NCBI GenBank assembly: GCA_002104905.1
Contig: MCFE01000233.1
Location: forward strand, 1 to 64,000
From: Basidiobolus meristosporus CBS 931.73
Taxonomy: Eukaryota; Fungi; Basidiobolomycota
Length of the DNA: 64,000 nucleotides
Direction of reading: 5' to 3'
This document shows positions 34,333-64,000 of the stretch, in pieces; position 1 is the first letter of the stretch; each line of letters opens with the position of its first letter. The notes beneath the pieces were generated by a model that saw only the letters and a list, made by a program, of their open reading frames with translations, searched no databases and had not been told where the DNA came from. Position numbers and translations under genes: made by a program.

Positions 34333-34350
34333 CGCAGAGACGGCACCAAA
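34333..34350 (-). other. Primer-binding site of family B, probably tRNA-His
   Basis: Minus strand TGGTGCCGTCTCTGCGG shortly after the LTR end; complementary to a ...GAGACGGCACCA tRNA 3' end, resembling eukaryotic tRNA-His. Confidence 0.6.
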
Positions 34351-34352
34351 TA

Positions 34353-34738: not shown

Positions 34739-35428
34739 TATCCCAGGGGTTAAGTGGGAGCTTTGTCCTTGAAGTTCTTTGACTAACTTGCTTCTCCAGG
34801 ATCAATTTCGTTTACGGAGCATGGGGAGTCAAGAAGAAGGATGGACACTTAGAATGTGCATTGACTACAGAGTTCTCAACTCAGTTACCGTGAAGAATAA
34901 GTATCCCATACCTTGGATTGATGAGCTTTTGGACCAACTCAATGGAGCCACTATATTCAGCAAGATTGATCTTGTGTCAGAATACAACCAGATTAGAGTG
35001 AAGCCAGAAGATATCCCTAAGACAGCATTCAGGACCAGATATGGACACTACAAGTACTTAGTCATGAGTTTTGGCCTCACCAATGCCCCTGCAACACTCA
35101 TGACTCTGATGCAGACTGTCATCTAGGAGTATGTAGATAAGTCTGTGATAATCCACCTAGATGACATATTGATATACAGCAAGACAGAAGAGGATCACAT
35201 GGTGCACATTGAAAAGGTCTTGAAGAAGCTAAGAGAGAACAAACTAGACTTGTTCTGTTGGATAGTGCCACATAGTGCCATCCTGTTTATGGTGCTGGAT
35301 TGATCTGGCACTCTACGGCACTACTTGGCACCATGACTTCTACCATGATGCCTGTGGTATGATACAGTTACTGGTAATTTTACTCAATCTTACTTATGTT
35401 GCTCAGAATAGTGCTTTCCTAGCTTTAT

Positions 35429-36312
35429 TTACTCTTCATAATGCTCCAGACACATTTCTCTCAGTGGATGTCTTCTTGTATGAACATACTGTGCATTAAT
35501 AAGTATCTTAACTATTTTACCTATTCTGCTGTTTTCTCCTATATATGACTTTCCTCTGTATTTACCTGCCAATATGCTGAATCTCTTCAGATATCCAAAT
35601 GTGTGCTCTACCCTTACTCTGAAATGGTTAAATATCTCATTGTAGAGCTTCTGCTTCCTGCTAAGTACACCATTCCTTGACTTCCTATAAGCTTCAATAC
35701 ATCCTAATCTCTGACAATCCTCTCCTATATAAGCTAAGTCTGCCATACATTTCTCCTCTCTACTGAATTCAGGATGATTCTCTACCCAGAGTGCTTTGTC
35801 ATGCCTACTTCCAGCAAATGGCCCACTAAACCAGATGATGTTACCCTCAATGTCAGACAGTGCTTGAAACTTCACACAGTGTGCCTTGTACTTGCCAGAA
35901 TAAAAGTGCCTCTGCCCTCTAGAAGGTCTGTTAATCCTCACTGGGAAGGTATCCAAAATACTCCTGATATGGAACCTGTTGCTGAACACTCTGGGATATG
36001 GAAGTCTATTGGAGCTTCTGAACCTAGTATTCCAAGCTTGCTCTAAGTCATTCATACCCTCTGCAAGGTGGTTCTCCATTGCTGTCAGCTGGGAATGAAA
36101 GCTTCTAGGACTTTTGTTGCCATGGATGGTGGGATGAAACCTTGTAGGGCAATAGTTCTTGTAATAGCAGAGAAGCTTGACAAGGATCTCCTTGAGTAGA
36201 TTGGGGTTGATGGTCCACAGTACTTGGAATAGATCTCCTCTAGTGTGTCAAAAGGAAATCCAGTGGTAGTGATGGGATTGATGAGAAAAGACCATTCAGA
36301 TGAGTAAGTCAT
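35429..36312 (-). pseudogene. DDE_Tnp_4-like transposase (~295 aa ancestral, one frameshift near 36180)
   Basis: ILDTFPVRINRP, YSGKYKAHCVKFQALSD, GSRHD, MADLAYIG, YNEIFNHFRVRVEHTFGYLKRF; copy 1 reads through the frameshift site (PIYLRRSLVKLL). Confidence 0.85.
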
Positions 36313-36671
36313 ATTAAAATTGGTGGATGATCATATTAAGGCGGTTTGAATCGATTTGGTATGATCCACCTTATTTATCTGATTTTTAATACATTATGGT
36401 TAAATCTCCATCAATTGCCATGTATCCCATCATTATGTTGCAAAAATCATCCGCAAACAATGCCTTGGTACTTTTATGGATGCTTTAATCATAGGTCTTT
36501 AATCTAATAGGAAATCTGCAATTGATGTGATCTGATCCATGTCAACACAATCCAAGATGCATCATGCATAATATATGGAAAATTCAACAATCACATTAGT
36601 TTTCATATATATTTCATATAAGACCAGGTTGATGCCAATATACTGCTGTATAAGTATCCAAATCCGTTGCT

Positions 36672-37401
36672 ATGGTCCCCATACCAAGCCTCAAGTCATC
36701 TTTAGTACAACCCAGACAAAACCCATCCCCCAGCTCACAAGCATGGTCTGGACCGGAAAAGTTGATGTTGGATCCGTTTGAGTTCTTGCCAAATGATTTT
36801 AGTATGGCCCAAGTGTCTATGATGAGCCTTCATACAGATATTTGGGCACTACTGATTAATCTAGCAGAACTAGATACCTCAGAGAGTCAACAAAGATGGA
36901 CAAAGCTCAGTAGAAAGCTGTGGCATGAGTTCTACATCAAGATGCCAGCCAATGTATGTAAAAAGATATATAACAAGACAAGTATTGAAATCAAGAATGA
37001 GCTGAGAGTGAGGGGATTTGACAAAGAAGCCACGCAGGAGCAATTTTGCACACAATTTGCACTGTACAGGCCGGACGCGTCCGTTTGTGCCTCAACTTTG
37101 GGAACCTAAGAGATTTTGCCTCAAATGACTAATGTACTACGTGATATATTAGTAGAGCTAAGTGGCTTCCAAGAGCAATATACGCAGGACTCATCCAGGC
37201 AACAGCTCCAAAGTATCAGACAGAGGGTAAGTGAATACCTTGAGGAGTCAGATGGTGAGCTTCAGGAGGAAGAATACAGACCACAAGCAACATCATCCAG
37301 ATCACGCCAGCACACCTTGCTGGATTCCCTACCATCTCTTGCAACCACAGTGCGCCGGCACATGTCAGTCCAGAGTACGCCAACACCCTTTACCAGTACG
37401 C
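36672..37401 (+). pseudogene. Second ORF of the Harbinger-like element, Myb/SANT(trihelix)-like
   Basis: RWTKLSRKLWHEFYIKMPANVCKKIYNK resembles the W..I...L.......CK.KW Myb/SANT pattern expected for the Harbinger accessory protein; one stop; then interrupted by the LTR-like insert. Confidence 0.55.
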
Positions 37402-38396
37402 TGTAGTGGGGTGAGAGTGACACCCACTGACAGATGTGCTCATTCCCTTATTTTCTACTTCCCTATACATCTACTACACATATTTTAGTTTTATCCCATT
37501 TGTCTTACCCAATCAGTACTATCCCATAAGCCAGTTGACTATCACACCTGCTTACCTTATTGCATAAGTTACCCCTCACTTTATGTAAGATTACTAGCTA
37601 TAAGTACTTCTATATTAGGCAAGTACCCGCGCCAGTACCCGTGACACATGATCAGCTTGTGTCACCATCCCTACCATTTCCATACCATATATGGTATCCC
37701 CATGTTACACAGGTCTCAGAATACTGCTTCCTGATTGGTTGGATGTGCTGTGCCTCTTAGAACCTTCCGGCACCTACTTAGAACATTCTTAGGTCATTCT
37801 GATGTCATTAAGATTTCTATTGATCTCTGGAACCTTCTGGAACACCATGATTAGTAATCACTTAGCCAGTGAGAAAAGTATATAAGGGAGGCTATCCCTC
37901 AACAATAAATCATCATCCCTTTTATCAATATACCAACTTGTTGATTAGTGTGATCACTGCTACCTGCTGCTACCTGAACTTCCAACCCCAGACCACAGGA
38001 CACTCCCAGGAAACCGTGCTGACAGCCAACTGACCTTGGAGGCACTACTTGTGAGGAATACTCAGAGTAGGTATCTTTTATTATATTTGATTCTTTCCTA
38101 AGTTTGTTCTTGTACAGGCAAAGATACTTTTCTGTCTTTGTAACTATTGACCACAGCTGCATTCTTATCAAGTCCCTGCTGGTGGAGTTTACAGTTGTTT
38201 TGACTTTGGAAGCTTTAGTACATTGTCATCTCAAAGGATGCTGAACCCAGCACATACTTTTGTTAAGATGCCAACTAAGTTGGGGATTGTAGCTCAATAG
38301 TTTTCCCTTGACAAGCTTGTGGCTTTATTCCCCTTCACATTAGATTAGAGACAGAACCCAAGTATTCCTAGCAAGCTTTTGCCAGAGGTTATTGCA
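37402..38396. repeat. Orphan ~1 kb LTR-like repeat, copy 2, inside Harbinger-like copy 3
   Basis: TGTAGTGGGG...GGTTATTGCA; homologous to 6516-7522; no clear TSD. Confidence 0.55.
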
Positions 38397-41300
38397 CCCA
38401 GTGAACACCCCACACACAAAACACTTGAGAAGTGTTGGACATATCTCTCCCTTGGACCTATACACCACCACAACGCCCTGCATCAAGTCAACGTGCTTTG
38501 GGTCAACGTGTGCGCTTCAGAGCAAAACTACAAGAACTTGCCAAACTGCTCATTTAGACACAAGTTCATTGGAGCGGACCAAGTTGCGTCAACTTGCAGC
38601 ATCACATCAAACTCAGCCAAGGGCCATCTCAACACGTCAAGGCGCACCTGCGTGTGCTGTTGTGCCTGACCATCAGCGAGTTACTTCTGGTGAACTGACT
38701 GATGATGACCAACATGAAGTGCCTCAACCACTGGAGCCCTTGGCAAGTAAAAGAACGTGTCAGTGCGTGGCACTACAGGCCAATTCAGTTGGTTCAGTCG
38801 GAGCAATTCAGCGTGGCCAAGCTGTAGCATTGCACTCATCAACTAGGAGGCAAAATACTGACTACAAATACACAAGTAGCCAAGATGATAGTCAGCCAGG
38901 AAGTAGTATAGGTGTGCAAAGTGAGTCACTACCAAATGCTTCAGTAGTAATCCCTGTGAGAAAAAAACCCAGGAGAAGATGATACAATTGCTTTGAATTG
39001 CTCACATTTGTAATGATCCCAACAACCCTTTTTTTTTGCAATCCAAATTGAGCCATTGCAAATCAGTAATCATCAAATTATTGATATAAGTAATATCAAG
39101 GCCATCTCACATTTGAGACAGAACCCCTATAAATAAACACCCTGCATATATATACATCATCTGTAATACCAGTGCAGCTATTAGATCTGTTTTGCACCCA
39201 CACAATTGCTTGCGTGCTGGCTATGACACCTTGTCCAATCACTAGGATCAGGGATTTACTTGCTCAATGAGCAAAATGGGATATTTGATGGCAAATCAGG
39301 TAGCTTTTTTAGTAGTCAATCAGCCAATTGGGGGCTGCCAGCTTCAGGATACTTTTGGACCAATTAACCACTGAGATACCGTCCAATTGGAGTGAGGGTA
39401 ACCAAAATGGTAAGTATTAGTGTAGTTTATAGTGTGATACACATTTATTTCCATTTACATTAAAGAGACATATCCAAATACCGGATTTTACCTGCCATAA
39501 TGGCGGTATCCAATCGCGCATGTGATGCAAACATTACAAGTTGGCACAATCATCCATTCCAACCTCATTGTGTCAGATTGTGCCATAGTGTGCGAGATTG
39601 TCCCGCATAGTGCAAAATTGTCAAAGAACAATCCTTCCTTCTGGTAGCTATAATATTGCGCCCAATTGTTCTTTACAACCACGGATTGCGCCGCACACCC
39701 TGGCATGGTACAATGGAACAAGTGTACTATATGGCAAGCTAGCCAAGTGTGAATTCTTCAAGGAGCATGTTGAATATCTGGGACATATAGTGACTAGCAC
39801 AGGAGTGACTTTAGACCCTAAGAAGGCTGAAGTTATCAAGAACCTGAAGTAGCCCCATAGCATATCAGAACTCCAATCATTCCTTGGAATGGTTTCCTAT
39901 TATTGGAGATTTGTCACGTCCTTTGCAAGTATTGCAGCCCCTTTAACTGATATTCTCAAGAAAGATAATACCTATAAGTGGGACATAGCTTGTGAGACTG
40001 GCTTCCAGATGCTCAAGAATGAACTTGCTAAGCTACCAAGCTTAGGAATACCTGACTTCAGGAAAGAGTTTACCCTGTGTACAGATGCTTCAGATTATGC
40101 AATTGGTGGAGTGTTGAGCTAAGAACACAAGGGAAAGCACTACTCAGTTGCCTTTGAATCCAAGAAACTGAACTCAGCAGAACAAAACTATCCAGTGCAT
40201 GAGAAGGAGATGCTTGCCATAATACACTGTTTGAAGACATGAAGATGCTATATTGAAGGAGTCAAATGCACCGTGAATACTGATCATGCTCTGCTCAAGT
40301 ATATATTTACTCAGAAGGTACTCACTAGAAGAATGACACAACAGAGTGAATACATTCAGCAATTTGATTTGGAGATTGTCTACTGCCCTGGGAAAAACAA
40401 CACAGTTGCAGATGCCTTGTCAAGTTTAGAACAAGTTGCACAACTTAACTTTGTGCATGAATCAGATTGGCCTAGCCTATTACAAAAGTACTTGGAGGAG
40501 CAAGCCTTTCCTAATGAGGTGGATGAAGAGATCAAGAAGATACTCTGGGATGAAGCCAGCAAATTTGTGGTACAGGATGAAGCACTCTACCTAATTGTTG
40601 ATTGAGGCACTATTGCCTGTCCCACAAAATATGAGATATCTGGACATGTTCCAAATATAATATACATCAGACTGCCAACCATAGATTGATAAGGAAAGTC
40701 AGCGCTTTCAGATGGCACCAAGCTCTCTTGATATGGTTGAGTTTTGACCAAGTTAAGGTTTGTCTCCATTGGGGTAGCTGCCGGTTTACAGTCTTTCATT
40801 TGATACTTCTTTAGTATATCTGAATATACTTGGATTGGCTTAGGGTAATAGTCTGGGTACTTCTGTCTATAGAGAACTTAATCCCTAAGTAGTAACTGAG
40901 TTCTCCAAGATTGGGCATCTTGAACTCCTTAGATAGGCTAGATTTAGTCTCTTCCAATGTTTCTAGGTTATCGGAGGCTATAATAAGATCATCCACATAT
41001 AGAGCTAATAGAGCTGGATTTGCCCTATCTGGCTTATAGTATATACTATAGTCAGCATTACTCCTTTTGAAACTCAAAGATTCCAAATAAGAATCTATCT
41101 TGCAATTCCAGGCTCTTAGTGATTGTTTGAGACCATATAGTGACTTTTTAAGCTAGCTCGCAGACCAAATGGGTGTTATCTTGGTCAGCAAACCCATCAG
41201 GCTGGTCCATATACACATTCTCATCAAGTTTGCCATTCAAAATGCAGCTTTTACATCCATTTGATGAATAAAAAACTTATGTTTGGCTTCAATAGCCAAT

Positions 41301-43978
41301 ATTAATCTGATGGAATTAAACTTGGCCACCAGTGCAAAGGTCTCACTATAGTCAAGTCCTTTTGCTTGAGAGTATCCTTTGGCCACAAGTCTTGCTTTGT
41401 ATCTTTCAATTGTAGCATCAGCCTTGTATTTTGTCTAGAAGACCCATCTGCATTCAATTTATTTTTGGTTGATTGGCAATTTGACTAAGTCCCAAGTTTT
41501 ATTTTCCATCAGGGCCTGATATTCCTCAGTCATTGCAGATCTCCAAAACTTTGTCTGAGGGCTATTTAGGGCCTCTTTTACAGTCTAGGGTTCATCAATA
41601 TGGACTGAATAGGCACAGGCTAAGTTTGTACTCTGATTGATATAGTAATTTGGGCTATTTCTTGTCTGATTGGATCTCTGGGCATTCAATACTGGAATAG
41701 TCACTTTTAGGATATTCCTGGGCACTGATTCTGGCTGAAACACAGTTGTAGTGTCCTCTGGAGTGAAAAAACTTTCATTGTTTTTCTCTGAATCAATCCT
41801 GACAATTGGTGGAATTAAGATCAGATTTGGCATCATCCGATGTCATTTTTTGTGAAAATTTTCAATTTTCATCAAACAACACATTCCTGGGCTTAATTAG
41901 CTTCTTTGCTTTGGTATTGTAGAGTCTGTATGCTTTACTCTTATTGCAGTAGCCCAAAAATATGCATTTTACACTTTTTGGCTCAAATTTTGACTAATTT
42001 CTGGGCAGTTTCTTGGCACATGCTTTACACCCAAATATTCTTAGATGTTCTGCACTTGGTCTGTACCCATACAATGCTTCAAATGGAATAGAATCACAAA
42101 GTATGCTGTTATAACTCCTATTTTTACAATATACAGCAGTGGCAACTGATTCTGCTCAAAAGTCATAGGATAATTTTTGATCATGGATCATAGATCTTGC
42201 CATATCAATTATTGATCTGTTGGCATGTTCTGCTACTCCATTTTACTGTGGGGAGTATGGTACAGTAGTCTCTGGCTTTATCAAATAAATTTTGCAGAAG
42301 TGGATGATGCGTTTTGAGGTATATTCTCCATCATTGTCAGAGGGTATTTTCTTAATTTTTCTCCAGTTTCTCTCTCCACCATGGCTTTGAGCTCCCTGAG
42401 CTTAGACAGAGCTACTACCTTTCTCTCCATGAAGTAGACCCATCTGTATCTTATATAATCATAAATAAAAGCAATCAAATACTTCATCCCGCCTAAGGAT
42501 TAATTTTGCATAGGTCCCCACAGATCTGAGTGAATTAGATCTAATTTTTTCCTAGTTTTGATCAACCCAGAGCTCTTGAACAGTTGTCTGGCTTGTTTCC
42601 CATATATGCAGGCTTCACAGTGCTCCAAACTAGCTGGGGAATCAGTTTCTACTCCAGAAACTAGCTGATCTTTGATCATTTTGCGCAAATAATCAAAATT
42701 GATGTGCCCAAATCTCCAGTGACAAAGCATTAGTGTTTCTTCACTTAAGTTACTTATATTGGCTTCCAAATATGATGGAATATAAGTCAACTTGTATAGA
42801 TTCTGATCTCTGATACCCAAAGCAATATGAGCACCATTTTGATCAGTGATCTTGCATCCAGAATTGTCAAAGCTGAAACTGAGTCCTTCAGTTGTTGCCT
42901 TGCTTACAGATAGTAGGTTCTTGGCTATTTCTTGTACATAAAGTACTTCTTTAAAGGTCAGTGTATGGCTTCTTTCACTGCTTCTTAGGCTTACTTGGAT
43001 AGTTCCTTCTCCCACTGCATCAAGTGTTCTATTGACACCCATGAAAACCTTCTTAATTGGAGTTTCTTGATATTGGGTAAAAGTTCTTTTTGGCGTGAAA
43101 AGTGTTGAGATGCTCCAAAGTCAGTGTACCACATCTGAGAATCCTTGTTTGTGGTCATACTTAGTGCATATATGAATAGTTGATCTTCAGTTGTTGCAGC
43201 ATTTCCATATTCAGGCTTCTTTTGCTGATTATCTCTCTTTTTGAGGCACCAGTCTGATATGTGTCCTTTCCTTTTACAGTAGCTGCAAAACAGGTTGCTG
43301 TTGCCTTTGTAGGGTCTTGTGTAACTCCTTTGTTGGTTCTCACTGCTTATTAAAGCATTTTCTTCTTCCTTCTTATTGGTGCTTGATTTTCTTAATTCTT
43401 ATCCAAGAGCCTTCCATATATGAAATTTTAGGTCAGATCTTCAGTTCTGGACTCTAGGGCTGCTAGAAGGCCCTAAAACCTGTCTGTCAGGCTATTCAGG
43501 ATGGTAACTATCACATCCTCATCAGCAGTTGGTACACGCATATATTCCATCTCATCTACCAGCAGGGTAATTCTGTAAATTAGATTTATCATTTCTTCTC
43601 CTGGTTGCATCTTTGTAGTAAAGAATTTTTGTCTCAGATACATTTTCTTAGCAGCTGAACATGACTGGTACGTGTCTTCTAATGCCTTCCAGGCATTCTT
43701 TGCCATTTTTGCTCTTGAGCATTGAATTAGCAATTTGTCTTTAACATTAAGGCAAATGCAGATAAAGGCACTTTGTTCTTTCTTCTGGTGCTTTAAGGCT
43801 TCCTTTCACATGTTTTTAGGAGGGCATTCTTCTCCCAAGACAATATCCCAAAGGCCTCTTTCTTGTGGCAGCATCTTCATCTGCACCTTCCAACCTTGGT
43901 AGTTAAATCCATCCAACTTTTCAGCAGGGGGGAAATTCCAGTAATAGCAGTAGTAGACATTGCAGAGAGTGACTGCTT

Positions 43979-43991
43979 GGGGCTCATAACC
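43979..43991 (-). other. Copia primer-binding site
   Basis: GGTTATGAGCCCC directly after the LTR terminal CA, a motif typical of fungal copia elements. Confidence 0.7.
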
Positions 43992-44339
43992 TGTTGTAAG
44001 TGTCTTGGAGATATTGGAAGTGATTGGGAGGACAAGTAAATTATGTGGTTTCACTTAATGATTTATTAAATGTAAAAGTAGTGCGTATACTTTTACATGG
44101 TCTTGGCATAACAAACACATAGAATAGGTTAAGGAAGATCCCAAGAACATGTGTGCAAAGTATGAGGCTGTTTGGACAACTTTGAGAATTTTTATGTTCT
44201 GGGTACCTAGTATTTTGGTGAAAATATTCAGAGTATATCCCAACAAGGAATTTGGTCAGTATTCTCTAGGATCTGAAGGTAATGATCTAAGTGACTAAGT
44301 TAGGTGAATATTTAGGTGGAATTACAAGCTTTTACAACA
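43992..44339 (-). repeat. Copia 5' LTR
   Basis: TGTTGTAAG...TTTACAACA. Confidence 0.85.
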
Positions 44340-44399
44340 TTCTTGGCATTTTTCCAAAGGTGTTGTCTCATTGCATAATGGTTTTTGCTGGGCTCATAC

Positions 44400-47172
44400 A
44401 GGGCACTGTTGTTAGGGAAGTTGGGCTAAGAATCCATTGGTGAGCTTGCTTCTTCAGAGCTATCACTCTGCGTGCCATATTCAGAAGACTGGGGGGAGCC
44501 TAAAGGTGTCACAAACTCTCCTGAGTCAGTATGCGCAAGGTGAGAAGTATGAACAGATGCTGTTATAGAAGTATCAAGTGAGTTGCAAGATATTGTTGGT
44601 ACAGTAGTGACTGGTGACTGGTCCAATTTGACTTGTGTGGCAAAGCACTGGCTGTGATTCTAGTAATACTTCCTATGCTGCCTGTGTGCTTGATGGCTGA
44701 GAGGTTTGCTACAATAGCCAGATGGTTGTTTTTCTCTTCTATTATGGTGTTGAATCAAAGTAGTCTTGTCCATGGGGCAAGCAGTTTGACACTCAACAGT
44801 GTAACACTATTATATCACTTTTTTGTCAATACTCATGTGAGCTTAAGACAGTCTTGTATTTGAGACATTGGGCCTACATGAATATAAGATTCAATGATGA
44901 CCTGCCATAGTAAGCATCATAAATAATGCTGTGGCATCACGTACACACATATATGCAACAGCATTTCTCTTTGGGCTTTACTCACTTCCATATATATGCC
45001 GCTAAAAAATAAAGCAAACTTGTCTGGTTCTTAACCAAGCCCTACTGCTAACAGCAGCAGAAGAATGGTTGGACAACTGCTTGATTTGACACTCAGTGTA
45101 ACAAGCAGGGCTGCAACTAAAAAAGCTTTATGGACTGTATGCCCACTGAAGGAAATAATGTGGACTCCTCAGGCTCTCTGTCAAGTAGGAAACTGGGAAT
45201 CTCTGCAGAGCCACAAGCTGACCATATTCCTGAGGCACATGAGAATGTAGCAAAAGCAGTACCTTCAGCTGAAGACCAGCAAGTGGCCATCATAACATCA
45301 CCACCACCTGTATTAGCATATATGCTGTCAGCTCATGCCAAAGCACTAATCAGGCAAGTAGGTGCAGTGGCTGATAGGATAGATGGAACAACCCAGAGGA
45401 ATCAGGAAATAGTCCAGTAACAGGATGAGTGGATAAAAGGTTTAGAGCAATCAATATCCCAGGTAGAGAAAGCAGTATCTTTGCTGCAAAGAAGGAACTT
45501 AAGTAGCTCTGTGTCACAGCCAGGAATTGAGCTATTTCCTGATGTAACGGCAGAGGAACATACCAAGACCGTAAGGCCAGCATACCATGGGACCATCAGG
45601 AACTCAAGGCTCAGCATAATGCACCTGACTTGCTCCACTAGCATTATCCTGGATATGAACAAGCAAATGGATTTTGGGCCAGCATTAGTTTACTAAGAAA
45701 GTACCTTAAGAATAACAGAAATTATCAATGGCAGAAGAACAAGGATATCATGCCTAAAACCAGCAGCTTCCTCAAGAGCCTGTTACAAGCAGGGTTGAAA
45801 GCTCCAAAGAAGTGTCAAAGAGGCATCAGGTAGCTAGAAGAGTGCCAATAAGGGAAAAGCAAGCATACACAGATGCACCAGCACAACACTTACCAAGGAA
45901 AAGGCATACTTTTACTCAAGAAGCACTCAGTCAAAGTAACAGTGAAGGACCTGGCAGTGATATAAACAAGTGGCTACCACAGGAGCCCTTCACAGCATTG
46001 GCTGAGAGCATGAAACAAGTGGGAAGGAAGCATCAGGTTGCCTGCAGAGTGCCAGCAAGGGACAAGCAGGCCACTACAGATGCATCAGAGCAGCATTTAT
46101 CAAGGAGTAAGCATAGTTCAATACAAAAGGCACTCAGACAAAGCAGCAGTGAAAGATCTGGCAGTGATAAAGGAAAAGGTGAAGGGGAAGAGTCTTCCCA
46201 AGCCAGAGACAAGTAAGTGTGAGAAAAAAGCTGCAGCTCTTGACGGTTAATGCTGTAAGCCTGGAACAGACTGAATCCCCTCATAGCCAAGAAGAATTAG
46301 CAACAAGAAAACAGCTGCTTTCACAAGAGTTGGAAGCGCGGCCAGTTGAGCTACACTCCAGTGAGGTAGATGAGTTTGCAGAGAAAGGCAATTTGTATAC
46401 CACAGCCTCCACATCCTCCATTATTGACAGAGCGGAGATCCCACTGACAGACAGAATAACAATGTCAAGAACTCAAAAGGGTATCATAATTCCCTCAGTT
46501 GAATTTGGAACATAATAGGCACATCAAGAGGCTGCAGTACTTCTTCAAGAGCAGTGCTCAAGAAAATGCACTTGAATATTGCAAGGACTGATTGCAAAGA
46601 CTGGCAGATGAGGAGCTAGACCTTGCAGTGCCAGCTAAAGACCAGGATGTATGGGAACCAACAATTGAACAGTGGTGTAGAGCCATATGGTTCCTGCTAA
46701 AGTCATGAAAATGGAGTAGTACAGCAGAAATACTAATTGAGTGGTGGATTATAATAAAGTTACTTGTTGAGCGTGGGGTTGGGCTTGTTGTTAGTGTAGG
46801 GTATTGGAACTTGTAGAGGTCAGTGCAATTGGAAATTGAGTTACAACTGAAGTTTTGACAGAAATAAACCAATTTGTATGCATGAAAAATAAGAACATTG
46901 GATGAGTCAGGAAATAAGGAGTGTGGAAAAGAGGCAATAACTAATCAATGAACACAAATATAGGAGGTATTTGAGTGTCTAGGATCAGAAAGTGACAGAA
47001 TTGGCAGAGAACCAATTAAAAGCCACTTATGTATTGTGGTGATGAAAAATTATGACCAAGTTTTTTGTAATGGTCTTTGCATGGTGTCCTGATGGGATTA
47101 ATTCCTCTTAGTTGCAGTATTTAGTACTGTGACAGCCTGTTGATGGGATTGTCATAGTAATTTTTCATAGAG
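44400..47172 (+). mobile_element. CACTA-like copy: transposase N-terminal stub (-), shared intergenic region, ORF2 (+) and terminus
   Basis: 44430-45420 matches 12760-13780; ORF2 remnants 45130-46515 contain a ~69-codon internal repeat; ends TTTTTCATAGAG. Confidence 0.7.
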
Positions 47173-49158
47173 TAGGGTTCCTGCTCAGGTCAAGGACATT
47201 GGCAGGAACCCTTTGGCTTTATGCGGTACATAACCTATAGGAGTCTTGCTAGGCCTTCTATACATGTTGTACTGTTTTAGCTCTAGTGCATTCAATTAAA
47301 AGCATATATTTGACCCTGAAGTATATGAGGCTGAAGGGTCACTGTTCTTTCATCCAATACTGTAGTGCTACTTTGAATGCACCAACAGTAGAGTATTCTT
47401 CCCTCATGAAGTATGCAATGAACCTTTCTGGCAGCATCCTACTGTACCTATCATACCTAGAAGTTACACCCATCCAGCATTTCCACAGATGTAAATATTT
47501 CATTTATGGTAGTAGCAGACATTTTGAGAGCCACAGCTTGGGGCCTATATACTATTGTAAGAGCTTTCAAGACATCAGAGGTGATTGGGCAAGCAGGCAA
47601 AATTTATGGTCTGAACCTAATGATTTATTAAATATAGAAGTTGTGTAGGTACTCTAACGTAGTACTTGTAAAGCACACTTACAGCAACTAATACATCCAG
47701 TGAAGTATTGAGTGATAGCCAAACAATATGCTAGTCCCTCAGGTCACATAAATCTACTCCAAGACCCTCCTATCATTGACTTGGTAGCAGGTTCATCCCA
47801 CTGTTTATCAGTGTGAGAATGTTTGATGGTAGTTTTAGTATTATTTCATACAGTGACTTCCTAGGGCTTGTAACCCATAGAGAGAGTCTTTGAGCCTTTA
47901 AGCTGACATGGAGAGTAAGCCTACTTTTTGCTTTCACTTGGCAACTTGTGGGCTGTAGACATGGTGCCCTAGCTTTTGCAACAAAGGTTCTAAGGGCATA
48001 TGCACAAAGGCAGTGGAGTTGGACCATATGAGGAATTTAAATCTTCAGGGTATCTGCAGTTTTTCTTAAAATAATTGACTTGCTCCATAATTTTGAAGAA
48101 TTATGATGATGTCAAGTGCCTGATTATGACCAAAGTTGACCTGGATATCACTCTAAAGTATCAAACATTTATCTACTGAACTAGCACCAAGAGGTACTAT
48201 GCACAATGACACTATGGCACAAGTCAACACAGTTGGTCAATGCAATATATGATTTTGCTCAAGCACTGTTGTCATTGCAAATTCTGGTAATATGCAAAAT
48301 TAAAGACAGGTTAAATTTAAATTTCTTGCTGCTTGGAGTCAATTTATGCAGATTGACTTCAGCCCAAGTATGCTTTACTCTAAGCTAGTCATTGATATTT
48401 GCATATCAGAGTATTGTCAGATTCCAACTTCTAGATTTAAAGATCACAGATAGCTCATGCAAGTTAGGTAAGTAGTGCACCATTATTTGGAAACAGCAAA
48501 CTGGCTAATCATCCACCTTTAGGGCACAAATCAGCTTCAGGTTACTAGGACAGAGCATTGGCCATTATCTTTTAGTGGTATCCATAGATAGAGAGCTAAC
48601 TATGAGATTACTGGTGTGGTTGCTGGTGCTTTGCTGATAGTGTTCAGATTCCACCATTGCTGGCCAAATTAGAGCCTTGAGCAAAATATATGACCAAAAA
48701 CCTAAGCAAATGTTCCTACAGGTTATGTATACACATTAGCTGTGAAAGCACTGTTACTATTCATTCAAACAATCACTCCACTGTTGTATTTCCCAGGCTG
48801 CCATATGAGAGTTATTTTTGCTGAATTGGCAATCTGATCACATATATGCAAAGGCTACAAAATTGGTGTGAAGGAAACTGCACTAAACACAATATATAAT
48901 GCAAGCCCAAGCTAGCCAATCATTATTCACGCGGATCAATATATGAATGTAAAGGAATGCAGCACTTACCACCAATCTTCAATAGATTAAGGGAGCAATG
49001 GTTGACTGTTTGTAAGAAATAACGGCGATTTTCCGAACGGTAATCGGGCATGCAAAGCTGTACACTCCTGCAGATGGCCTACATTACTTGTTCAGTCGAT
49101 ACTTAATCTGCTAGGGGCTGTATGCGAGCCTCTGAACCTTGTTCTTCTCTAAGACAAT

Positions 49159-55371: not shown

Positions 55372-56400
55372 CACCTCGAGAACGACTAATAAATACGAAG
55401 GAGTAAGAGCTGTATCTTCGTGGGTATGAAAGAAACGACAACGGTCAAGGATATAATTTCAGATGGCATTCCAAGTAAAATAGCGGCAAGCTATATAAAT
55501 GTTCATGCGTTATCCCCTGAGGGAATGAGTCAAACCAATTTTTGGTGCGTGAACAGATTTAATCTACATATGTTACATTTTACCCAAAGATTTTTGAGTG
55601 AACTTCGGCTTTGCACTGGTTGTCCACAGTTGGACCACGACTACAATACCCTGATAACCCAATCGTCGTCTAGCTTTGATTTTTCCTATATTGATTATCG
55701 TACAACAATCCAACAAGGGGAAGTATTTGTGACTTTTATTATTAGAAGGAACGCCAATTTCTTTTCTAGAACCTAATTAACATATTCACAGGGATCGTCA
55801 TCAAAGACAAAGAAGCTTCGTCGCAGCAAACCTAGTTTAAGACTAGCTCTGGTGAATGATAATGACGCCACAATTGCAAAGTATTCAGCATACCACGGAA
55901 TCTAGCAACGTTTAGGAGATGCTATCAGTAAGCACCATGGCAAACTCCGTGGCTCATGACGTTATTCCCGATGAGACAATCAGAAAGACCTGGAGGATCA
56001 CTTCTCACTTTCTCAGGGCTAAGACTCATTTCATTATATAGATGTTCTGGAAATTACGTGTGTGGTACGACCACTAGAGTATGGAAATATCAATCAGACA
56101 ATCAGTATTGCCCTGATCATCTCACAATAGATCTTTGAAACATGGCTGTATGCGTTTTTCCATTATGCTTGATCACTAAGTTACCTGAATATGTGATGCT
56201 AAATGGCTCAGTATAAGATAGATTGGAGTCCCGGTTAGTGAGTTGCAACTGTCATCAATTTCAGGCAATAGCTTCTTGTTTTCCAGAGTGCTTTGAAGTT
56301 GGTTCATTTTCACCTTGGCCAAGTAGAAGAGCAACTCGAACGGACATATTGAATTCCGGTTGATCCACAAAACTTTAGTAGGCAGTTATTACCGTTTAAT

Positions 56401-59400
56401 ATGGTTGAGCTGGAGACGGTAAATCTGAGTGATATCACAAGATTTGATAATAGTTACCTTCAATCCACGGAGGAGGACATCACCCAAGAGGATTGTTGGG
56501 CTGTTATTACCTCTTTTTTTGAAGAAAGAGGCGTAGTTAGGCAGCAATTGGATTCATTCGACGAATTTATCCAAAACACTATCCAGGATATCGTAGACAA
56601 GAACTCAGAAATAGTCATAGAATCATCGAGCGGGTGCGACTCGACTATCGTAAATAAACTCGAGTCGGTATATTTGCTTGGTTTGTTATCAACATTTTGC
56701 TTCCTAGATTCAGTATCAAATTCAATTTGGGCAAATTTATCTCTCAAAGCCAACAATAACTGAGGCAGATGGCAGTACTAATTCTATATCTCCAAACGAA
56801 GCACGTTTACGTCAATTAACGTATGAAGTTATAACAGTAGCAACAGCATAACAATATCGCTATAACCTACGAAATTTTCCATAGGTACTCGGCACCCCTT
56901 TACGTTGATATGAAGAAACGCATTTCTCCTGGTACCAACGAGGCAAAAAACTCCCAACTGTTAAGGAAATCCTCCACTGGCTATTCAAAGGACCAATATG
57001 ATAAGATGTTTATCGGAAAGGTAAGTTGGTTGTGATGATAACTTCTGGAATGACTAATCGTCATTTTACCGTTTGATGTACAGATCCCCATCATGTTACG
57101 TTCCTCTTTCTGTGTTCTTACAGGGCTGGATAGAGCTGATTTTCATAATCTCGACGAGTGTCCTTATGATCAAGTGTGTATATATCAGATTTTTCTTTAA
57201 TACTTATGTTAATGAATTTGAATAGGGAGGGTACTTCGTGGTAAATGGCTCAGAAAAGGTGCTTATAGCGCAAGAGCGAACAGCAACAAATAAGGTGTTC
57301 GTTTTTGCCAAGACCCCACCATCACCCTACAGTTTTATTGCAGAGGTCAAGAGTGCTACATCCCGAGGACATTCACTGGTGAATCCTGTTCTGGTCAAAA
57401 TGTTGGCGAGCAATACAAGCAAAGGGGTAGGTACGATATTTTATATTCTACTTAGCGTAGATGGCTAATTACTCTCTAACAAATTCAGATATCTGGACAA
57501 TACATACGCGTCAACCTACCATACATCAAGCAAGAAATTCCTGTTGTGATCGTATTTAGGGCTCTAGGAATCTTGGCAGATAAAGATATATTGCAGTACA
57601 TATGTTACGACAAGAATGATTCGCAAATGCTAGAGTATATGAAACCATGCATTGAGGAAGCCTTTGTTATTCAGGAAATGAACGTAGCATTGGATTTCAT
57701 CGGACGAAGGGGCCACTATGTAGGAGTTAGCAGTGAAAAAAGAATTCGGTAGAATATGAAATTCCATCTTTGTTCGAGATTGACACTCAACTATCAATAA
57801 TCTAGACATGCTAGTAGTATACTACAAAATGAATTTCTTCCGCATATGGGTATTCAAGCCTACAATCAAACTAGAAAAGCATACTTCCTCGGGTATATGG
57901 TGCATCGGCTGCTTTTAGCATCTTTAGGAAGGCGTGAGTTAGATGATCGCGATCATTATAGCAACAAACGAATGGATCTAGTAGGACCGTTGCTAGCAAT
58001 GCTATTTCAAACATTGTTTAAAAAATTATCCAAAGATATTGGAAAGTACATTGGTAAATGCATTGAATATAATCGTGACATCCGACTGACATCAGCTGTA
58101 AAATCGAATATCATTACAAACGGGCTGGTATATTCATTAGCCACTGGAAACTGGGGTGACCAGGCTAAGCAGTTGCAAGCAAGAACGGGTGTATCACAAG
58201 TATTGAATCGCTACACGTTCGTCTCTACATTATCGCATTTGCGCAGGTGCAACACCCCAATTCACCGTAATGGCAAACTCACAAAACCACGTCAATTGCA
58301 CAATACGCAATGGGGAATGATATGCCCAGTAGAAACGCCTGAAGGGCAAGCCTGCGGTTTGGTCAAAAATTTCGCATTAATGGCATATGTATCTGTTGGT
58401 TATCCACCGGGAGATATTTTCGACCTGCTAGAAGAATTAACAATGGAAAATTTGGAGGAGGTTTCGAAGGAGGACCTTGTGGATACTACCAAAGCCTTTG
58501 TGAATGGAATATGGGTAGGAATTCATCATGACCCCACCTCGTTGATGAATATTTTACGACACGCCAAACACCAAGGGTATATCAGTCCTGAGATCAGCAT
58601 TGTGTATGACTATCGAGACCAAGAACTGCGGATTTTTACCGATGCAGGTCGAATCTGTCGCCCACTATTCGTTGTCGAAGATAACAAATTGCGAATAACA
58701 AAAGGAGACATACGCTCCTTGCAGAATGGAGAAAATACTGAAGGACCTTTTGGCTGGCCCGAGCTTATTACTAACGGTATTGTCGAATATATTGACACAG
58801 CTGAAGAGGACTTTGCGCTTATTAGTATGACTCCTGAAAATATGCGCGGAATCAGTAATCGTCATGAGACGGATATTGAGTTGGAGAAAATGTCCACTTC
58901 AAATCATCAACTGTGGACACATTGTGAGATTCATCCGAGCATGATTCTTGGCGTTTCAGCAAGTACAACTCCATTCCCTGACCATAATCAATCTCCGAGG
59001 AATACCTACGGTGCAGCGATGAGCAAGCAAGCAATTGGTACACATCTAACTAATCATCTTTTACGTATGGACACCAATTCCAATACGTTGTACTATCCCC
59101 AAAAGCCATTGTGTACCACCAGATCTATGGAATACCTACGATTTCATGAGTTTCCGACTGGACAGAATACTATTGTGGCTATATTATCCCACGGAGGCTA
59201 CAATCAAGAAGATTCTTTAATAATGAACCAAAGCAGTATTGATAGAGGTCTATTCCGGAGTACTTATTACCATAGTTACATGGATCAAGAGAAGATAAAT
59301 GGTATCATCACAAATCAAAGATTTGAAAACCCTGATCCAAACACAACGATAAGAATGAAGCCTGCAGGGTACAATTGGATAGACGATGATGGCATGGTGA

Positions 59401-60471
59401 TTCCCGGTACGAGAGTATCTAACGATAGTGTCATCATTGGGAAAACGATGCCAATCCCGAATGGCTCAGAGGAATTAGGACTCCGCACCGAAGACCATAA
59501 GAACATCGATATAAGCACGACAATCAAGATGAGTGACTCAGGAATTGTTGATAGAGTGATGCTGAGTACAGGTCAGGACGGGGTGAAACTTGCAAAAGTT
59601 CGAGTTCGAAGTACTAGAATACCTCAAATTGGCGACAAATTTGCCAGTAGACATGGGCAAAAAGGGATTATAGGTCTGGTATATCGACATGAAGACATGC
59701 CGTTTAGTCAAGAAGGGATCGTTCCTGATATTATCATTAACCCTCATGCGATCCCCTCGCGTATGACAATAGGACATTTGGTTGAATGTTTACTAAGTAA
59801 GGTTTCGGCACTAAGCGGTAGTGAAGGAGATGCTACACCGTTTACTAGTGTTAGTGTTGATGCAATCTCCGAAGCCATTCAAGCCTTTGGTTATCAAAAA
59901 CGGGGACTGGAGATATATTATAATGGTCTAACCGGTAGAAAACTGGAAGCACAGGTATTTGTAGGGCCAACCTACTATCAAAAATTGAAGCATATGGTGG
60001 ACGACAAGATCCATAGCCGTGCTCGGGGACCCCTTCAAATCTTGAGTCGTCAACCGATTGAAGGAAGGAAGAGAGAAGGAGGGCTTCGATTCGGAGAAAT
60101 GGAAAGAGATTGCATCATATCGCATGGCATGGCATTGTTTCTGAAGGTAGCTTTCCTTCTCCATCTACTTGATACTATTCAACGATATAACAATCATGAT
60201 AGGAGCGACTTTGTGATGTTTCCGATGAATACAGGGTTCATATATGCGATTTATGTGGCCTCTTGGCAATAGCGAACCTCCGAAAAAACACTTTCGAATG
60301 CCGTAGCTGTAGAAATAATACGAGGGTATAATCATATCGCGTTTAGATTTTGGTTGAATTCTAACATGTTTTATGCCCTAGATTTCTCAAGCACTGATTC
60401 CTTACGCGTGTAAACTATTATTCCAAGAGTTAATGGCGATGAACATATCTCCACGTATAGCGGTTGCCTAA
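56401..60471 (+). CDS. RPB2: RNA polymerase II second-largest subunit, intact but unusually divergent (probable paralog); about 8 introns
   Basis: [60 protein letters not shown]-terminal [24 protein letters not shown]; exons join in frame; TAA ends at 60471. Confidence 0.95.
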
Positions 60472-60661
60472 GGTTTTCGGCAATGATTGGAAATGCAATT
60501 CTAGAAAGCAGTAAGCTCACAAACACCGTATATATGTAAATTTCGCTGTTATGATCACAAGCCCCAGGTAGAGAATGAAACATATTAAAGGAAACAACAA
60601 ACAGCGACATGTAAAAGAAACAATGGCCCCAACAATTTAGTAAACTGTATTGATGTGAGAG

Positions 60662-61732
60662 TTAATTTGAATCTGGTTTTTCGAATCGAAGGAAATCAAC
60701 TTCTATATCAACGGACTTTTTCTTATGGAATTTGTACATCGCGGGAACATCAAACTGTGGATGAAGTTTAACAACTATTCGAATAGAGTAGCAACGATGA
60801 CCTTACCTTTAATTCAGCAACCACTTGGCAAGTAACTCCCCACTCCTTGGCTTTCTTCATGATGTGCTAGAAAATGATTTTAGTAAACTTGGCTTAATCA
60901 ACATCAAGAAGAGAAGTACTTACTTCCCTAGTGGATGTTTTATGCAGAGAATATACAGCCTTGTTAGCGAGCTGAAAGTATTTATCCAGAAATCCCGGAT
61001 GATGATCAGTCAATATTCACGATGACAGCCACTTAAAGCCAACCTCACCTCAATACCACGCTTCAGAAAAACCATATCGATGCCAGCATTGTTTTTCGTT
61101 CCAAATGGAGGGTTCATAAGGATAGTGTCAAGTTTACCACGAAAACGCTTGAGCAAATCCTCGTCTTGGCTGGCCAGATCTATGTTAATTAAATCCATCT
61201 CTATTTCCAACTCTTCGCAGTTTTCTTGTGTGATAGCTAAAGCGTCAGGATCAATATCAAAACCAACGTTATATCTAGGAAGGAATACGTTAATTTAAAC
61301 GAGCTGTAGCTTTGGTCTCAGCTTGAAAAATATTTACTTACGCGGAGCCCATCATCTGAGACGCAATGCTAACATCCACCCAAGAATAAAAGAGAGGATA
61401 GGGTTTAATGGACTTGTAAGCAACTTGAATGAACACTTGGTAGAATGCATCGAAATCAAGATGTACCTTAAAATTCCACAGCCACAACCGAAATCACCTA
61501 CGGCTTTATCTTCGATATCTTCGTATGAGTTCTGGGCTGTATAAAGCATCCTGGCAGCTAAATGTGGAGTGGTAGGATATTGCTCGAACTGGATTTTCGG
61601 GTTGTCTAAACCATCGATGGAATCAGCACGAAAGTTATAACAGGAGCACATCTCGAAAAAAAACTATAGAGACAGAGTCTTACCGAACACTGCAACTTCC
61701 TGCAAATATCCTTCGAGTTGTTTGAGCTTCAT
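60662..61732 (-). CDS. METTL5: METTL5-type 18S rRNA N6-adenosine methyltransferase, multi-exon
   Basis: MKLKQLEGYLQEV..FDNPKIQFEQYPT; DFGCGCG SAM motif; MNPPFGTKNNAGID; YSLHKTSTR; YKFHKKKSVDIEVD. Confidence 0.9.
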
Positions 61733-62139: not shown

Positions 62140-64000
62140 TCACTGATGACCTTGAAGAATAATATCAATGCAGTTGTTAATAAATTCCTTCTTGATGGTC
62201 ATGTCCATACCAAAGTAGCGGGATAGCTCGTCCCGAACTTGTTTTTTGGTAATCGACATGAGGTTAGCTGTGGAGAGGATCTGTTGGACCTCGTCCATAA
62301 TCTCCTGATCAGTTGGTAGGTTGGAGAGAGCGCCACCACGACCACCCACACCTTGCATCACCGGATGATATTCATTCACGTTGGCACTTGATGTGTAAGG
62401 AGGCACACTGGACGCGTTGCTTGCTCGAGGTCGTTGCCTGGAAACCTCAGGTGTGGCAGCTCCTCGATTACGAGAGTAGTCTCTATACTCCGATCGAGCA
62501 GCCGAATGAGCCCTGGAGCCTCTATCTTTTGAGTGCGATTGCCCGCGCAGTGACGTTGGGTAAGGGGAAAGGCTCTGAGCAGAGTGAGGAACAGGTGTGA
62601 CGGAACGCCCTCGTCCTCCTGATGAGTAATACGGGTCTACTGAGCCATGAACCGAAGGTGATGGCATACTAATGTAACTCAATCCCTCAGGGCCACGAGA
62701 TTTCGACCGACTGTAGGATTGACCAGAGCCTTTGGAGTCGTGTGAAACGTAGGTATCGGCCTCCCATAACTCCTGCTCGTAGTCGCCCCATTTCTTCAGT
62801 GGCACTGAGGCGGGGTCGAACTTCTCTTCACTCGAAACATGAGCCACCTTGCCTTTTTCGCCAACGACCACGCGGGTATTACCCCACGAGAAGTCATCGA
62901 AATGCCAGAATGCGTACACGGGAAGGAAGAAACTGAAGATGGGGAGCGACAGCAGGTACACGATCATCCAGCCGATATGCTGCCATTGCCGCTTAATCAG
63001 GAAGATGAAGATCTGGAGCCCGTAGATCGCTACGAGCATGATGATGGAGATTAGTTGAAACGACGAGGGATCGGTGATGCATTTGTACAACAGGTAGCCT
63101 AGGTAGAAGCACTGCACCGGCATGATGATGGTGGAGAGCAGATCGACGAAGACAACAAAACGCATGGAGAAGCAACAGAAGCCGCACAAACGTGGGAGAT
63201 GTAGAAGCTCAGCAAGGTTGTGAATGGTCGAGTTGATCCAACGACGACGCTGTGACAGTAGCACTGACCATTCGTCTGGCGCGTTCGTCTGGCACTTGGC
63301 ATCAGGCGTGAACGTCATCTTGTTGTAATTGAAATGCTTCAGCATCAAGGTGGTCAGATACCGATCCTCGCCGAGGGATAGCAGGTTCTTCTTGTGAAGA
63401 GTATCTACCTTGTTCTCCGAATAATCCTCAATGATGATGTTGGCGATCAACAGAGGCTGATTCTTTGTCGGAGTACGGAAACGATACATGCAGAAGCATC
63501 CGGGCAGACAGGTGACCGAGCCGAACAATGACTCGAATGCCTTGCTCAGATGGTGGGAAATGAAGTACTCGTAAACCTGGATCATCGTTATGTACGAGGC
63601 TTTGGCGTTGAGCAATTGGGTCTCACCGCAGAGACCCATGATTTTCGAGTCGTTGAGCATGCAGGAGACCATTCTATTGAGCGAGTCCGGCAAGACGATT
63701 GTATCCGCATCAACCATCAGCACGTACTCGTAGAAGTAAGGATCGACACCGATGACATTCTTGATTTGGTGGTACATCTCGAGTTCCAATGGACTCATTT
63801 CGCTGTTGAAGTGCACCTTGTTGAAGAACTGCATCAATATCAGCTGCGAGTCACGTTTACCTCGGTTCCCTGGTCTTGAGCGCTCTGAAGGCTTCCCAAT
63901 CTTCACCACGACGAGGTAGGGAACAGCGTGGCCGGAGCATTCGTACAGCCCAGTGTAAACCTTCGCCATGTTCAGCTGCTGGTTTCCTTCACCGAGCGCC
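62140..64000 (-). CDS. CHS: Division-II chitin synthase (class V/VII-like, C-terminal DEK-C domain), 5' part outside the window
   Basis: [39 protein letters not shown]; terminal DEK-C-like [28 protein letters not shown]. Confidence 0.93.

Follow-up and report, generated by a model that had tools for sequence, protein, structure and literature searches.

Basidiobolus meristosporus CBS 931.73 carries, beside a canonical RPB2, an intact and fast-evolving paralog of this gene which, judging from sequence comparison, keeps the catalytic residue set of the second-largest Pol II subunit and is constrained between isolates. The paralog lies in the window, the whole stretch of 64,000 nucleotides analysed here (contig MCFE01000233.1, assembly GCA_002104905.1). 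We consider it probable, at about 60%, that it encodes a selectively maintained alternative second-largest subunit, which would form a variant Pol II. In fungi, RPB2 is regarded as a housekeeping gene present in one copy and serves as a standard marker for phylogeny. The second RPB2 of B. meristosporus is 34% different in protein sequence yet kept under selection, against differences of 0.2-3.8% in the fungal RPB2 duplicates reported earlier (PMC1599754). A literature search turned up no description of a divergent second RPB2 in fungi, Basidiobolus included.

Gene structure and assignment to Pol II Rpb2

The exons join into a full-length protein without a stop, exactly at the coordinates proposed in the initial annotation (56401-60471). 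The translation was 100% identical to the NCBI model product, which bears a generic name, in the protein database comparison. The 3543-nt coding sequence (CDS) is stop-free, and all nine introns, of 52-64 nt, have GT-AG borders. The gene is composed of the following parts:

56401..60471, + strand: divergent RPB2 paralog, whole gene; 10 exons, 1180 aa (P0001)
56401..56418, + strand: exon 1 of the gene model
56419-56472, + strand: intron 1; 54 nt, in frame and open
56473-56649, 56714-56820, 56885-57020, 57084-57173, 57226-57426 and 57489-57748, + strand: exons 2-7; protrusion and lobe, with introns at ancestral fungal positions
57806..60146, + strand: exon 8; 2341 nt, covering the lobe end, fork, external domains, hybrid-binding region and wall
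60203..60325, + strand: exon 9; four zinc cysteines at 60245-60310
60382..60471, + strand: exon 10; the intron before it is ancestral in fungi and was lost from the canonical Basidiobolus copy

Since intron 1 could be read through in frame, the model is least secure at the N-terminus. A copy of the paralog from another isolate (sequencing runs X4 and X5, from another sample and study) differs within intron 1 by indels at two positions (56448 and 56455) and by a substitution of the acceptor base itself (56472), which fits a non-coding status of this intron. Exon 8 is without four introns that the canonical Basidiobolus copy has.

The Pfam domains Rpb2_1 to Rpb2_7 are all present and collinear, with E-values from 1e-15 to 3e-133 and scores somewhat under those of the canonical copy. 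Against PDB chains, the paralog scored 1019-1104 bits with Rpb2, about 650 with archaeal Rpo2, 531-572 with RPC2, 450-456 with NRPD2 and 303-314 with RPA2; by these scores and by the tree described below, its affinity is with Pol II Rpb2 rather than with the second subunits of Pol I, Pol III or Pol IV/V. Its identity to fungal RPB2 is 61-66%. Orthology to plant NRPD2 was ruled out, as the paralog branches inside fungal RPB2 and its NRPD2 score is less than half of its Rpb2 score. Like canonical fungal RPB2 (S. pombe 3h0g_B, S. cerevisiae 1i3q_B and the canonical Basidiobolus protein P0002), the paralog is full length with seven collinear domains, has the same catalytic, NTP-binding and zinc residues, and shares seven introns. 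It differs in being the second copy in its genome, on a branch about nine times longer, and in being 36 residues shorter, in variable loops and the acidic N-terminus.

Age, placement and selective constraint

The expectation that this gene would not be the only RPB2 was borne out: the canonical copy P0002 lies on contig MCFE01000432.1 of the same assembly, and the case of a sole RPB2 in a fast-evolving lineage is thereby excluded. P0002 is 66% identical to the paralog and carries none of its unusual substitutions. In the protein database, nothing was more than 65-66% identical to the paralog except its own product, and at 50% clustering the paralog shares a cluster with ordinary RPB2.

In a site-heterogeneous maximum-likelihood tree, the paralog came out as sister to P0002 (support 92/58); the terminal branch measured 1.32 for the paralog and 0.15 for the canonical copy. 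AU tests rejected an origin before the non-flagellated fungi (p = 0.0023) and, under the site-heterogeneous model, a grouping with Dikarya (p = 0.008); a placement outside the clade of the canonical copy and Kickxellomycotina was not rejected (p = 0.20). FastTree, run under a simple model with 112 sequences, joined the paralog to the base of Dikarya (support 17); since this is the grouping that the AU test rejects, we took it for a model artefact. On these trees the paralog is best placed, with moderate support, as the sister of the canonical Basidiobolus RPB2. Introns and shared derived residues were considered as independent proof of sisterhood and found uninformative: the shared introns are ancestral, and only two residues are uniquely common to both Basidiobolus copies, fewer than are shared by chance with some other taxa.

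A relative-rate count against the fungal consensus gave 210 paralog-specific and 47 canonical-specific changes (chi-square 103, p = 3e-24), and by sequence divergence the paralog has evolved about 5-9 times faster than its canonical partner over its whole length. The two copies differ at 64% of third codon positions, which indicates that synonymous sites are saturated and that the paralog is an old duplicate. Seven of its nine introns occupy ancestral fungal RPB2 positions, pointing to duplication at the DNA level and not to a retrocopy. A viral or retrocopy origin was rejected on account of these spliceosomal introns and the 61-66% identity to fungal RPB2.

The copy in runs X4 and X5 is 89% identical to the paralog across the whole gene. 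The indels listed for this comparison are all intronic (12 of 12), and six further indels exist. Over the first 430 bp, which include 302 coding nt, the two copies differ by 23 synonymous, 4 non-synonymous and 13 intronic changes, corresponding to a dN/dS of roughly 0.05 for a sample that holds 40 of the 459 differences between the two copies. These alignments indicate that the paralog is under purifying selection between isolates and is not decaying. A recent duplicate with dN/dS near 1 is excluded both by the age of the duplication and by the ratio of about 0.05 in the first 430 bp.

Altered and retained residues

Motifs were checked against 111 other full-length fungal RPB2 sequences and the PDB Rpb2 chains of S. 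pombe, S. cerevisiae, K. pastoris and mammals. The motif changes described in the initial annotation all hold against the fungal sequences and the yeast, fission-yeast and mammalian Pol II chains, and a sharing of these substitutions by the canonical RPB2 of relatives is excluded by this comparison, P0002 carrying none of them. The stretches concerned are as follows, in yeast numbering:

57957..57980, + strand: YSNKRMDL for (F/Y)GKKR(L/M)DL; G402S and K403N; the Gly is invariant
58257..58295, + strand: fork loop 2, PIGR(D/E)GK(I/L)AKPRQ altered; G503H, D505N and A509T, with R512 kept; the Gly is invariant and the Ala 99% conserved
58323..58346, + strand: CPVETPEG for CPAETPEG; A525V, with E529 kept; the Ala is 99% conserved
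58998..59039, + strand: RNTYQSAMGKQAMG region, altered; Q770G, S771A, G774S and M778I, with R766, Y769, K775 and Q776 kept
59187..59216, + strand: metal-B pair; E836/D837 kept, flanking Y830H and S831G changed
59631..59666, + strand: K979/K987 stretch, unchanged; adjoining residue T989I
59976..60014, + strand: YQKLKH region; YQRLKH to YQKLKH, R1094K (the Arg is invariant), with HMVDDKIH kept
60063..60083, + strand: switch 3, GRSRDGG to GRKREGG; S1123K and D1125E; the Asp is invariant

In the (F/Y)GKKR(L/M)DL motif, the Met is not specific to the paralog, as the canonical Basidiobolus copy has Met too. Within the RNTYQSAMGKQAMG region, the three replaced residues Gln, Ser and Gly do not vary among the 111 fungal RPB2. 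Six of the substitutions (G503H, Q770G, S771A, G774S, R1094K and D1125E) alter residues that are also invariant in the human and yeast structures, and fork loop 2, switch 3 and the stretches adjoining the NTP-contacting R766/Y769 and the metal-B pair all hold changes of residues identical from yeast to human.

The catalytic set was rightly described as kept: R512, R766, Y769, E836/D837, K979, K987, R1020 and the four zinc cysteines are found at the aligned positions. The QSPRN stretch is unchanged, and the elements facing Rpb1 are retained, among them switch 3 and the clamp and anchor regions (80% identity).

Among the 351 columns that are invariant in the 111 other fungal RPB2, the paralog departs from 29 and keeps 92%; the next worst taxon, Allomyces, departs from 11, and the median is 0. 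Measured on this alignment, the motif changes exceed chance or ordinary lineage variation by far. Changes affect 8% of invariant columns, 26% of columns conserved at 95-100%, 39% of those at 80-95% and 76-84% of variable columns, and this steep fall with family-wide conservation suggests that an Rpb2-type constraint acted along the long branch. The changes in conserved columns, 89 in all, are spread evenly across all eight domain blocks (chi-square p = 0.56). A focus on contacts with the transcription bubble and hybrid, as proposed at first, is therefore not borne out, and the emphasis on these elements amounts to a pick from a gene-wide pattern. The description of a retained, neofunctionalised paralog survives in its first part, the gene being retained, old and constrained, but not in its second, since the even spread fits general relaxation equally well as adaptation.

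Proposed role of the paralog and alternative readings

The paralog is thus best explained as an old DNA-level duplicate of fungal RPB2 that was kept in the Basidiobolus lineage beside the canonical copy; after duplication it accelerated some 5-9 times over its whole length with the residues for catalysis, NTP binding and zinc retained, and purifying selection on it is strong at present. We propose that its protein would stand in for canonical Rpb2 in part of the Pol II pool, with Rpb1 and the small subunits presumably common to both forms of the enzyme. The variant Pol II would carry altered second-shell residues near the active centre (in fork loop 2, after R766/Y769, beside the metal-B pair and in switch 3), may differ in elongation, backtracking or bubble handling, and would probably be used at a low level or under particular conditions. 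The known system closest to this mechanism is the actinomycete rpoB(R)/rpoB2 (Nonomuraea gerenzanensis), a 'mutant-type' second beta subunit beside the wild type in a large genome, which is believed to replace the wild-type subunit within one shared core enzyme and so to alter the enzyme's properties, and in some actinomycetes the second rpoB controls antibiotic production and adaptive metabolism (PMC5431353). That system differs in being bacterial, tied to rifampicin resistance and secondary metabolism, and accompanied by functional data.

Codon bias is weaker in the paralog than in the canonical gene (Nc 57 vs 49; GC3 0.40 vs 0.45), which fits lower expression. No RNA run was among the listed sequencing runs that match the paralog. 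In run X3, the kind of which is a guess, three short identical pieces fall at the 3' end of the paralog, one of them extending 6 nt into intron 8.

The weaker codon bias would also suit a redundant duplicate under relaxed selection, which would have no distinct function and drift slowly to loss, tolerated as Basidiobolus keeps many overlapping genes. Consistent with such redundancy, the conserved-column changes are unfocused over the domains (chi-square p = 0.56), and Basidiobolus is noted for overlapping paralogs, e.g., EF-1alpha and EFL (PMC3281927). Nevertheless, we regard this reading as unlikely: the 3543-nt frame and nine correct introns are intact despite synonymous saturation relative to the canonical copy, 92% of the invariant columns are kept, and within the first 430 bp the differences from the other isolate are mostly synonymous (23, with 4 non-synonymous), the listed indels all being intronic. 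A truly redundant copy would be expected to have been lost long before such divergence was reached.

It is just as doubtful that the paralog belongs, as second-largest subunit, to a separate fourth nuclear polymerase, which would have a largest subunit and possibly further subunits of its own and, like Pol IV/V, might produce non-coding RNA for the silencing of CpG-mutated repeats. Equally improbable is the related reading that Basidiobolus has independently evolved a specialised Pol II-derived polymerase, with the paralog as its second-largest subunit, for one transcript class, e.g., non-coding transcription of CpG-mutated repeats or a spore/zygospore programme; if true, fungi would have in this enzyme an equivalent of plant Pol IV/V or of the development-specific Pol II of ciliates. 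Plant NRPD2 and the Oxytricha RPB2 paralog likewise come from duplicates of Pol II subunits (PMC5312943, PMC2834690), and the alteration, around the active centre, of residues invariant from yeast to human would suit a polymerase of this kind. Large repeat blocks with a CpG o/e of 0.01-0.12 occur in the window and indicate that a CpG-directed genome-defence process exists in B. meristosporus. These CpG-stripped blocks end near 48 kb, at least 8 kb from the paralog, whose CDS has a CpG o/e of 0.90 (0.88 in the canonical CDS) and a TpA/ApT of 0.72; its GC-to-AT excess is modest (533 vs 423). Since the CpG content is normal, repeat-directed CpG (RIP-like) mutagenesis does not account for the divergence of the paralog, and the link with CpG mutagenesis or silencing that the initial annotation had suggested is not upheld. 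Points against a fourth polymerase are that the paralog is 66% identical to Rpb2 and far less diverged than NRPD2 (about 1100 vs 456 bits), and that it lies among housekeeping genes, none of its neighbours being an RNAi or methylation partner.

The plant NRPD2/NRPE2 subunits of Pol IV and Pol V resemble the paralog as duplicates of the Pol II second subunit that exist beside RPB2 and have changed conserved sites. They differ in origin, which is independent, the paralog being nested inside fungal RPB2, and the paralog matches NRPD2 at 456 bits as against about 1100 for Rpb2. Outside plants, the development-specific RPB2 of Oxytricha trifallax is likewise a lineage-specific divergent duplicate beside the housekeeping gene (PMC5312943). 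Known for Oxytricha are stage-specific expression and the duplication of several other Pol II subunits; the two origins are again independent.

The Oxytricha paralog is expressed only in macronuclear development and has been proposed to bind dsRNA and not to transcribe (Khurana et al. 2014, as summarised in PMC5312943). With this precedent, the Rpb2 fold of the Basidiobolus paralog might be reused outside transcription as an RNA- or protein-binding factor, which we hold to be less probable still. Its catalytic, NTP-contacting and zinc residues and the Rpb1-facing elements are all kept, which counts against a non-catalytic role that would not need them, and even for Oxytricha a transcription role is held to be more parsimonious in PMC5312943.

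The flanking genes of the paralog encode DUF726, a GH31 glucosidase, a small methyltransferase, a class V chitin synthase and RPL19e, and no biosynthetic cluster was found within 10 kb on either side; a self-resistance gene in such a cluster is therefore not supported. Fork loop 2 and the residues directly before it, which we take to correspond roughly to the end of bacterial rifampicin cluster I, are altered in the paralog. The unchanged QSPRN stretch contains the Gln that is presumably an amanitin contact, and we know of no inhibitor that acts through the altered Rpb2 residues. A resistant spare Rpb2, active when a natural inhibitor or an own metabolite blocks the canonical enzyme, could explain the changes at fork loop 2 and has a parallel in the rifampicin-resistant rpoB(R) of Nonomuraea, some actinomycetes having a second 'mutant-type' rpoB that forms a second RNA polymerase (PMC5431353), but with the intact QSPRN stretch and the cluster-free neighbourhood against it, we consider it the least probable reading.

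Should the paralog assemble into Pol II as the alternative subunit that we favour, it would offer a natural experiment on which active-centre residues can be changed in a working enzyme, and it might represent the first fungal case of polymerase specialisation by subunit duplication. For phylogenetic work, any genome-derived 'RPB2' of Basidiobolaceae needs a check for paralogy before use in trees. Against the forward RPB2 primer for this family, the paralog shows 4 mismatches and the canonical gene 1, which partly explains why the paralog went unnoticed.

Identity and motif changes of the divergent RPB2 gene

Comparison with the protein database showed that the 1180-aa product of the divergent RPB2 gene exactly matches P0001, which NCBI titles 'beta and beta-prime subunits of DNA dependent RNA-polymerase [Basidiobolus meristosporus CBS 931.73]' and nothing more specific; the window covers the opening 64 kb of contig MCFE01000233.1 (assembly GCA_002104905.1).

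56401-60471, forward strand: divergent RPB2 gene (the paralog), 10 exons and nine GT-AG introns of 52-64 nt
56419-56472, forward strand: its intron 1, 54 nt, in frame and stop-free, which could be read through as coding

All seven Rpb2 domains were detected in P0001 by Pfam. The best solved-structure matches were Pol II Rpb2 chains (1019-1104 bits), while archaeal Rpo2, RPC2, plant NRPD2 and RPA2 all scored well below them. The initial annotation had read through the open intron 1, making its N-terminus 18 residues longer than the database model. In another isolate (sequencing runs X4 and X5) this stretch carries indels and its last acceptor base is altered (G56472T), which fits the intron status of 56419-56472. 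An AG 3 nt downstream of 56472 could act as acceptor instead in that isolate.

The protein was examined in an alignment of 112 full-length fungal RPB2 proteins from a homology search, and yeast numbering was transferred from ungapped PDB alignments; residues 360-540 take an offset of +20 and residues 700-1130 one of +38. R512, E836/D837, K979, K987 and R1020 all land correctly, which checks this numbering. Every motif change in the initial annotation proved real in both kinds of alignment.

Changes in the divergent protein (yeast residue, yeast position, paralog residue)
G402S, K403N
Fork loop 2: G503H, D505N, A509T
A525V
Q770G, S771A, G774S, M778I
R1094K
Switch 3: S1123K, D1125E

The catalytic and structural residue set is intact in the alignment, as had been claimed. 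One item of the initial list, the Met of KRMDL, occurs in the canonical Basidiobolus copy too and is not specific to the paralog. Beyond the changes already listed, Y830H and S831G adjoin the metal-B pair and T989I directly follows the unchanged 12-residue stretch that holds K979 and K987, all three changes being at sites invariant elsewhere. Altogether, of the 351 columns at which the other 111 sequences show no variation, the paralog departs at 29, compared with 11 in the runner-up taxon and a median of 0. Going by published Pol II structures, R766 and R1020 would contact the NTP, Y769 would lie at the backtrack site, and fork loop 2 would sit at the downstream fork; this loop and the residues just before it presumably correspond to the end of bacterial rifampicin cluster I.

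The canonical copy and the origin of the duplicate

The prediction that this gene is not the sole RPB2 was confirmed by P0002 (1216 aa, contig MCFE01000432.1, locus L001), annotated in the same assembly as the Pol II second-largest subunit. It is 66% identical to the paralog, and every motif checked in it has the standard form. In a 24-taxon maximum likelihood tree under a site-heterogeneous model, P0002 was the sister of the paralog (support 92/58), with terminal branches of 0.15 and 1.32, respectively. AU tests rejected an origin that predates the non-flagellated fungal radiation (p = 0.0023) and a grouping with Dikarya (p = 0.008), and tolerated a placement immediately outside a group of canonical Basidiobolus and Kickxellomycotina (p = 0.20). 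FastTree with all 112 sequences put the paralog elsewhere on an unresolved backbone with support of 17. The safest statement from these trees is that the duplicate originated among the zygomycete-grade fungi; the simplest placement of the duplication is within the lineage of Basidiobolus.

Seven of the nine paralog introns lie at positions common to Basidiobolus, Calcarisporiella, Rhizophagus or Syncephalis RPB2 genes. Intron 9 (60326-60381, forward strand) is an ancestral C-terminal phase-0 intron, also found in Rhizophagus and Syncephalis RPB2 and lost from the canonical Basidiobolus copy, while four central introns of that copy are absent from the paralog, leaving a single 2341-nt exon. These shared and ancestral positions indicate that the paralog stems from a duplication, at the DNA level, of a fungal gene rich in introns, and the intron pattern excludes both a retrocopy and a virus-like gene. 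Third codon positions of the two copies differ at 754 of ~1180 codons, which marks the duplication as old.

Fungal RPB2 duplicates in earlier reports differ by 0.2-3.8% at the protein level (PMC1599754), and our literature search found no divergent RPB2 paralog described for Basidiobolus or for other fungi. The Basidiobolaceae forward primer gRPB2-7F targets MGKQAMG (PMC13370150); at its site (window 59019-59038) it has four mismatches to the paralog and one to the canonical gene. PCR-based work on this marker would therefore be prone to overlook the paralog, which helps explain why it escaped marker studies.

Rate and pattern of sequence change

Measured against a consensus built from 110 other fungi, the paralog has 210 private changes and the canonical copy 47 (chi-square 103, p = 3e-24). 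The paralog's change rate rose from 8% at invariant columns through 26% at 95-100% and 39% at 80-95% conservation to 76-84% at variable columns; because it tracks family-wide conservation, the long branch was not a neutral phase. Among columns at least 95% conserved, 89 of 578 were changed, evenly across the protrusion, lobe, fork, external domains, hybrid-binding/wall and clamp (8-20% per block, heterogeneity p = 0.56). Changes do occur in the bubble and hybrid elements stressed in the initial annotation, yet at a level that does not exceed that of other regions, and this even spread weakens the case for targeted remodelling. To judge from the sequences, the burst may have been either adaptive or a spell of relaxed constraint.

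The X4/X5 contigs, derived from a different sample and study and listed under the same species label, span the gene from end to end with about 89% identity. X5 shows 460 differences plus 20 gaps across 4219 bases, with transitions outnumbering transversions about 3 to 1. All 12 indels among those listed are intronic (introns 1, 2, 3, 4, 6, 8 and 9), and the first 40 substitutions (56414-56830) comprise 23 synonymous, 4 non-synonymous (in three codons) and 13 intronic changes, giving a dN/dS of roughly 0.05 for that stretch. Synonymous sites differ by about a third between the two isolates. Mostly synonymous differences and intronic indels show that the gene is conserved as a protein-coding gene in both isolates. 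The source genome itself showed no further copy sharing at least 80% identity. Across 56382-60600, the X4/X5 sequences differ by about 11% at the DNA level despite the shared species label, and upstream of 56382 the similarity between the two isolates ends. More than one species may be represented under the name B. meristosporus.

The window alternates sharply between CpG-poor blocks (1-28000 and 34001-48000; CpG o/e 0.01-0.12, TpG/CpA excess 1.3-1.5), which resemble the outcome of repeat-restricted CpG-to-TpG mutagenesis of a methylation- or RIP-like kind, and gene islands (28-34 kb and 48-64 kb; CpG o/e 0.5-0.95). The paralog lies in the latter island, and its CDS CpG o/e is normal (0.90, canonical gene 0.88), so repeat-directed CpG mutagenesis does not account for its divergence. 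The suggested tie between the gene and such mutagenesis comes down to their co-occurrence in one genome.

Candidate role, neighbourhood and expression

A selectively maintained alternative second-largest subunit is the best-supported reading of the gene product. Most likely it would take the place of canonical Rpb2 in Pol II, pair with the same Rpb1 and small subunits, and bring altered second-shell residues to the surroundings of the active centre. The closest functioning parallel comes from some actinomycetes, in which an additional, 'mutant-type' rpoB gives rise to a second RNA polymerase that differs in its regulatory behaviour (PMC5431353). Among eukaryotes, plant NRPD2 and a development-specific Oxytricha RPB2 paralog are precedents (PMC5312943). 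Each arose independently of the Basidiobolus gene. A separate Pol IV-like enzyme and a non-transcriptional role are possible at lower odds, as are a drifting redundant copy, in a genus noted for keeping functionally overlapping paralogs (PMC3281927), and a toxin-resistant spare.

The gene neighbourhood is ordinary and also includes RPL19e.

Upstream: DUF726 gene; GH31 glycosidase with trefoil domain
60662-61732, reverse strand: small MTS-type methyltransferase gene, immediately downstream
62140-64000, reverse strand: class V chitin synthase with myosin motor head, after the methyltransferase gene

The run searches listed no RNA run. In run X3, whose type is a guess, three short segments match the gene exactly close to its 3' end; one of these extends 6 nt into intron 8. 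Codon bias is weaker in the paralog (Nc 57) than in the canonical gene (Nc 49), which hints that the paralog may be expressed below it.
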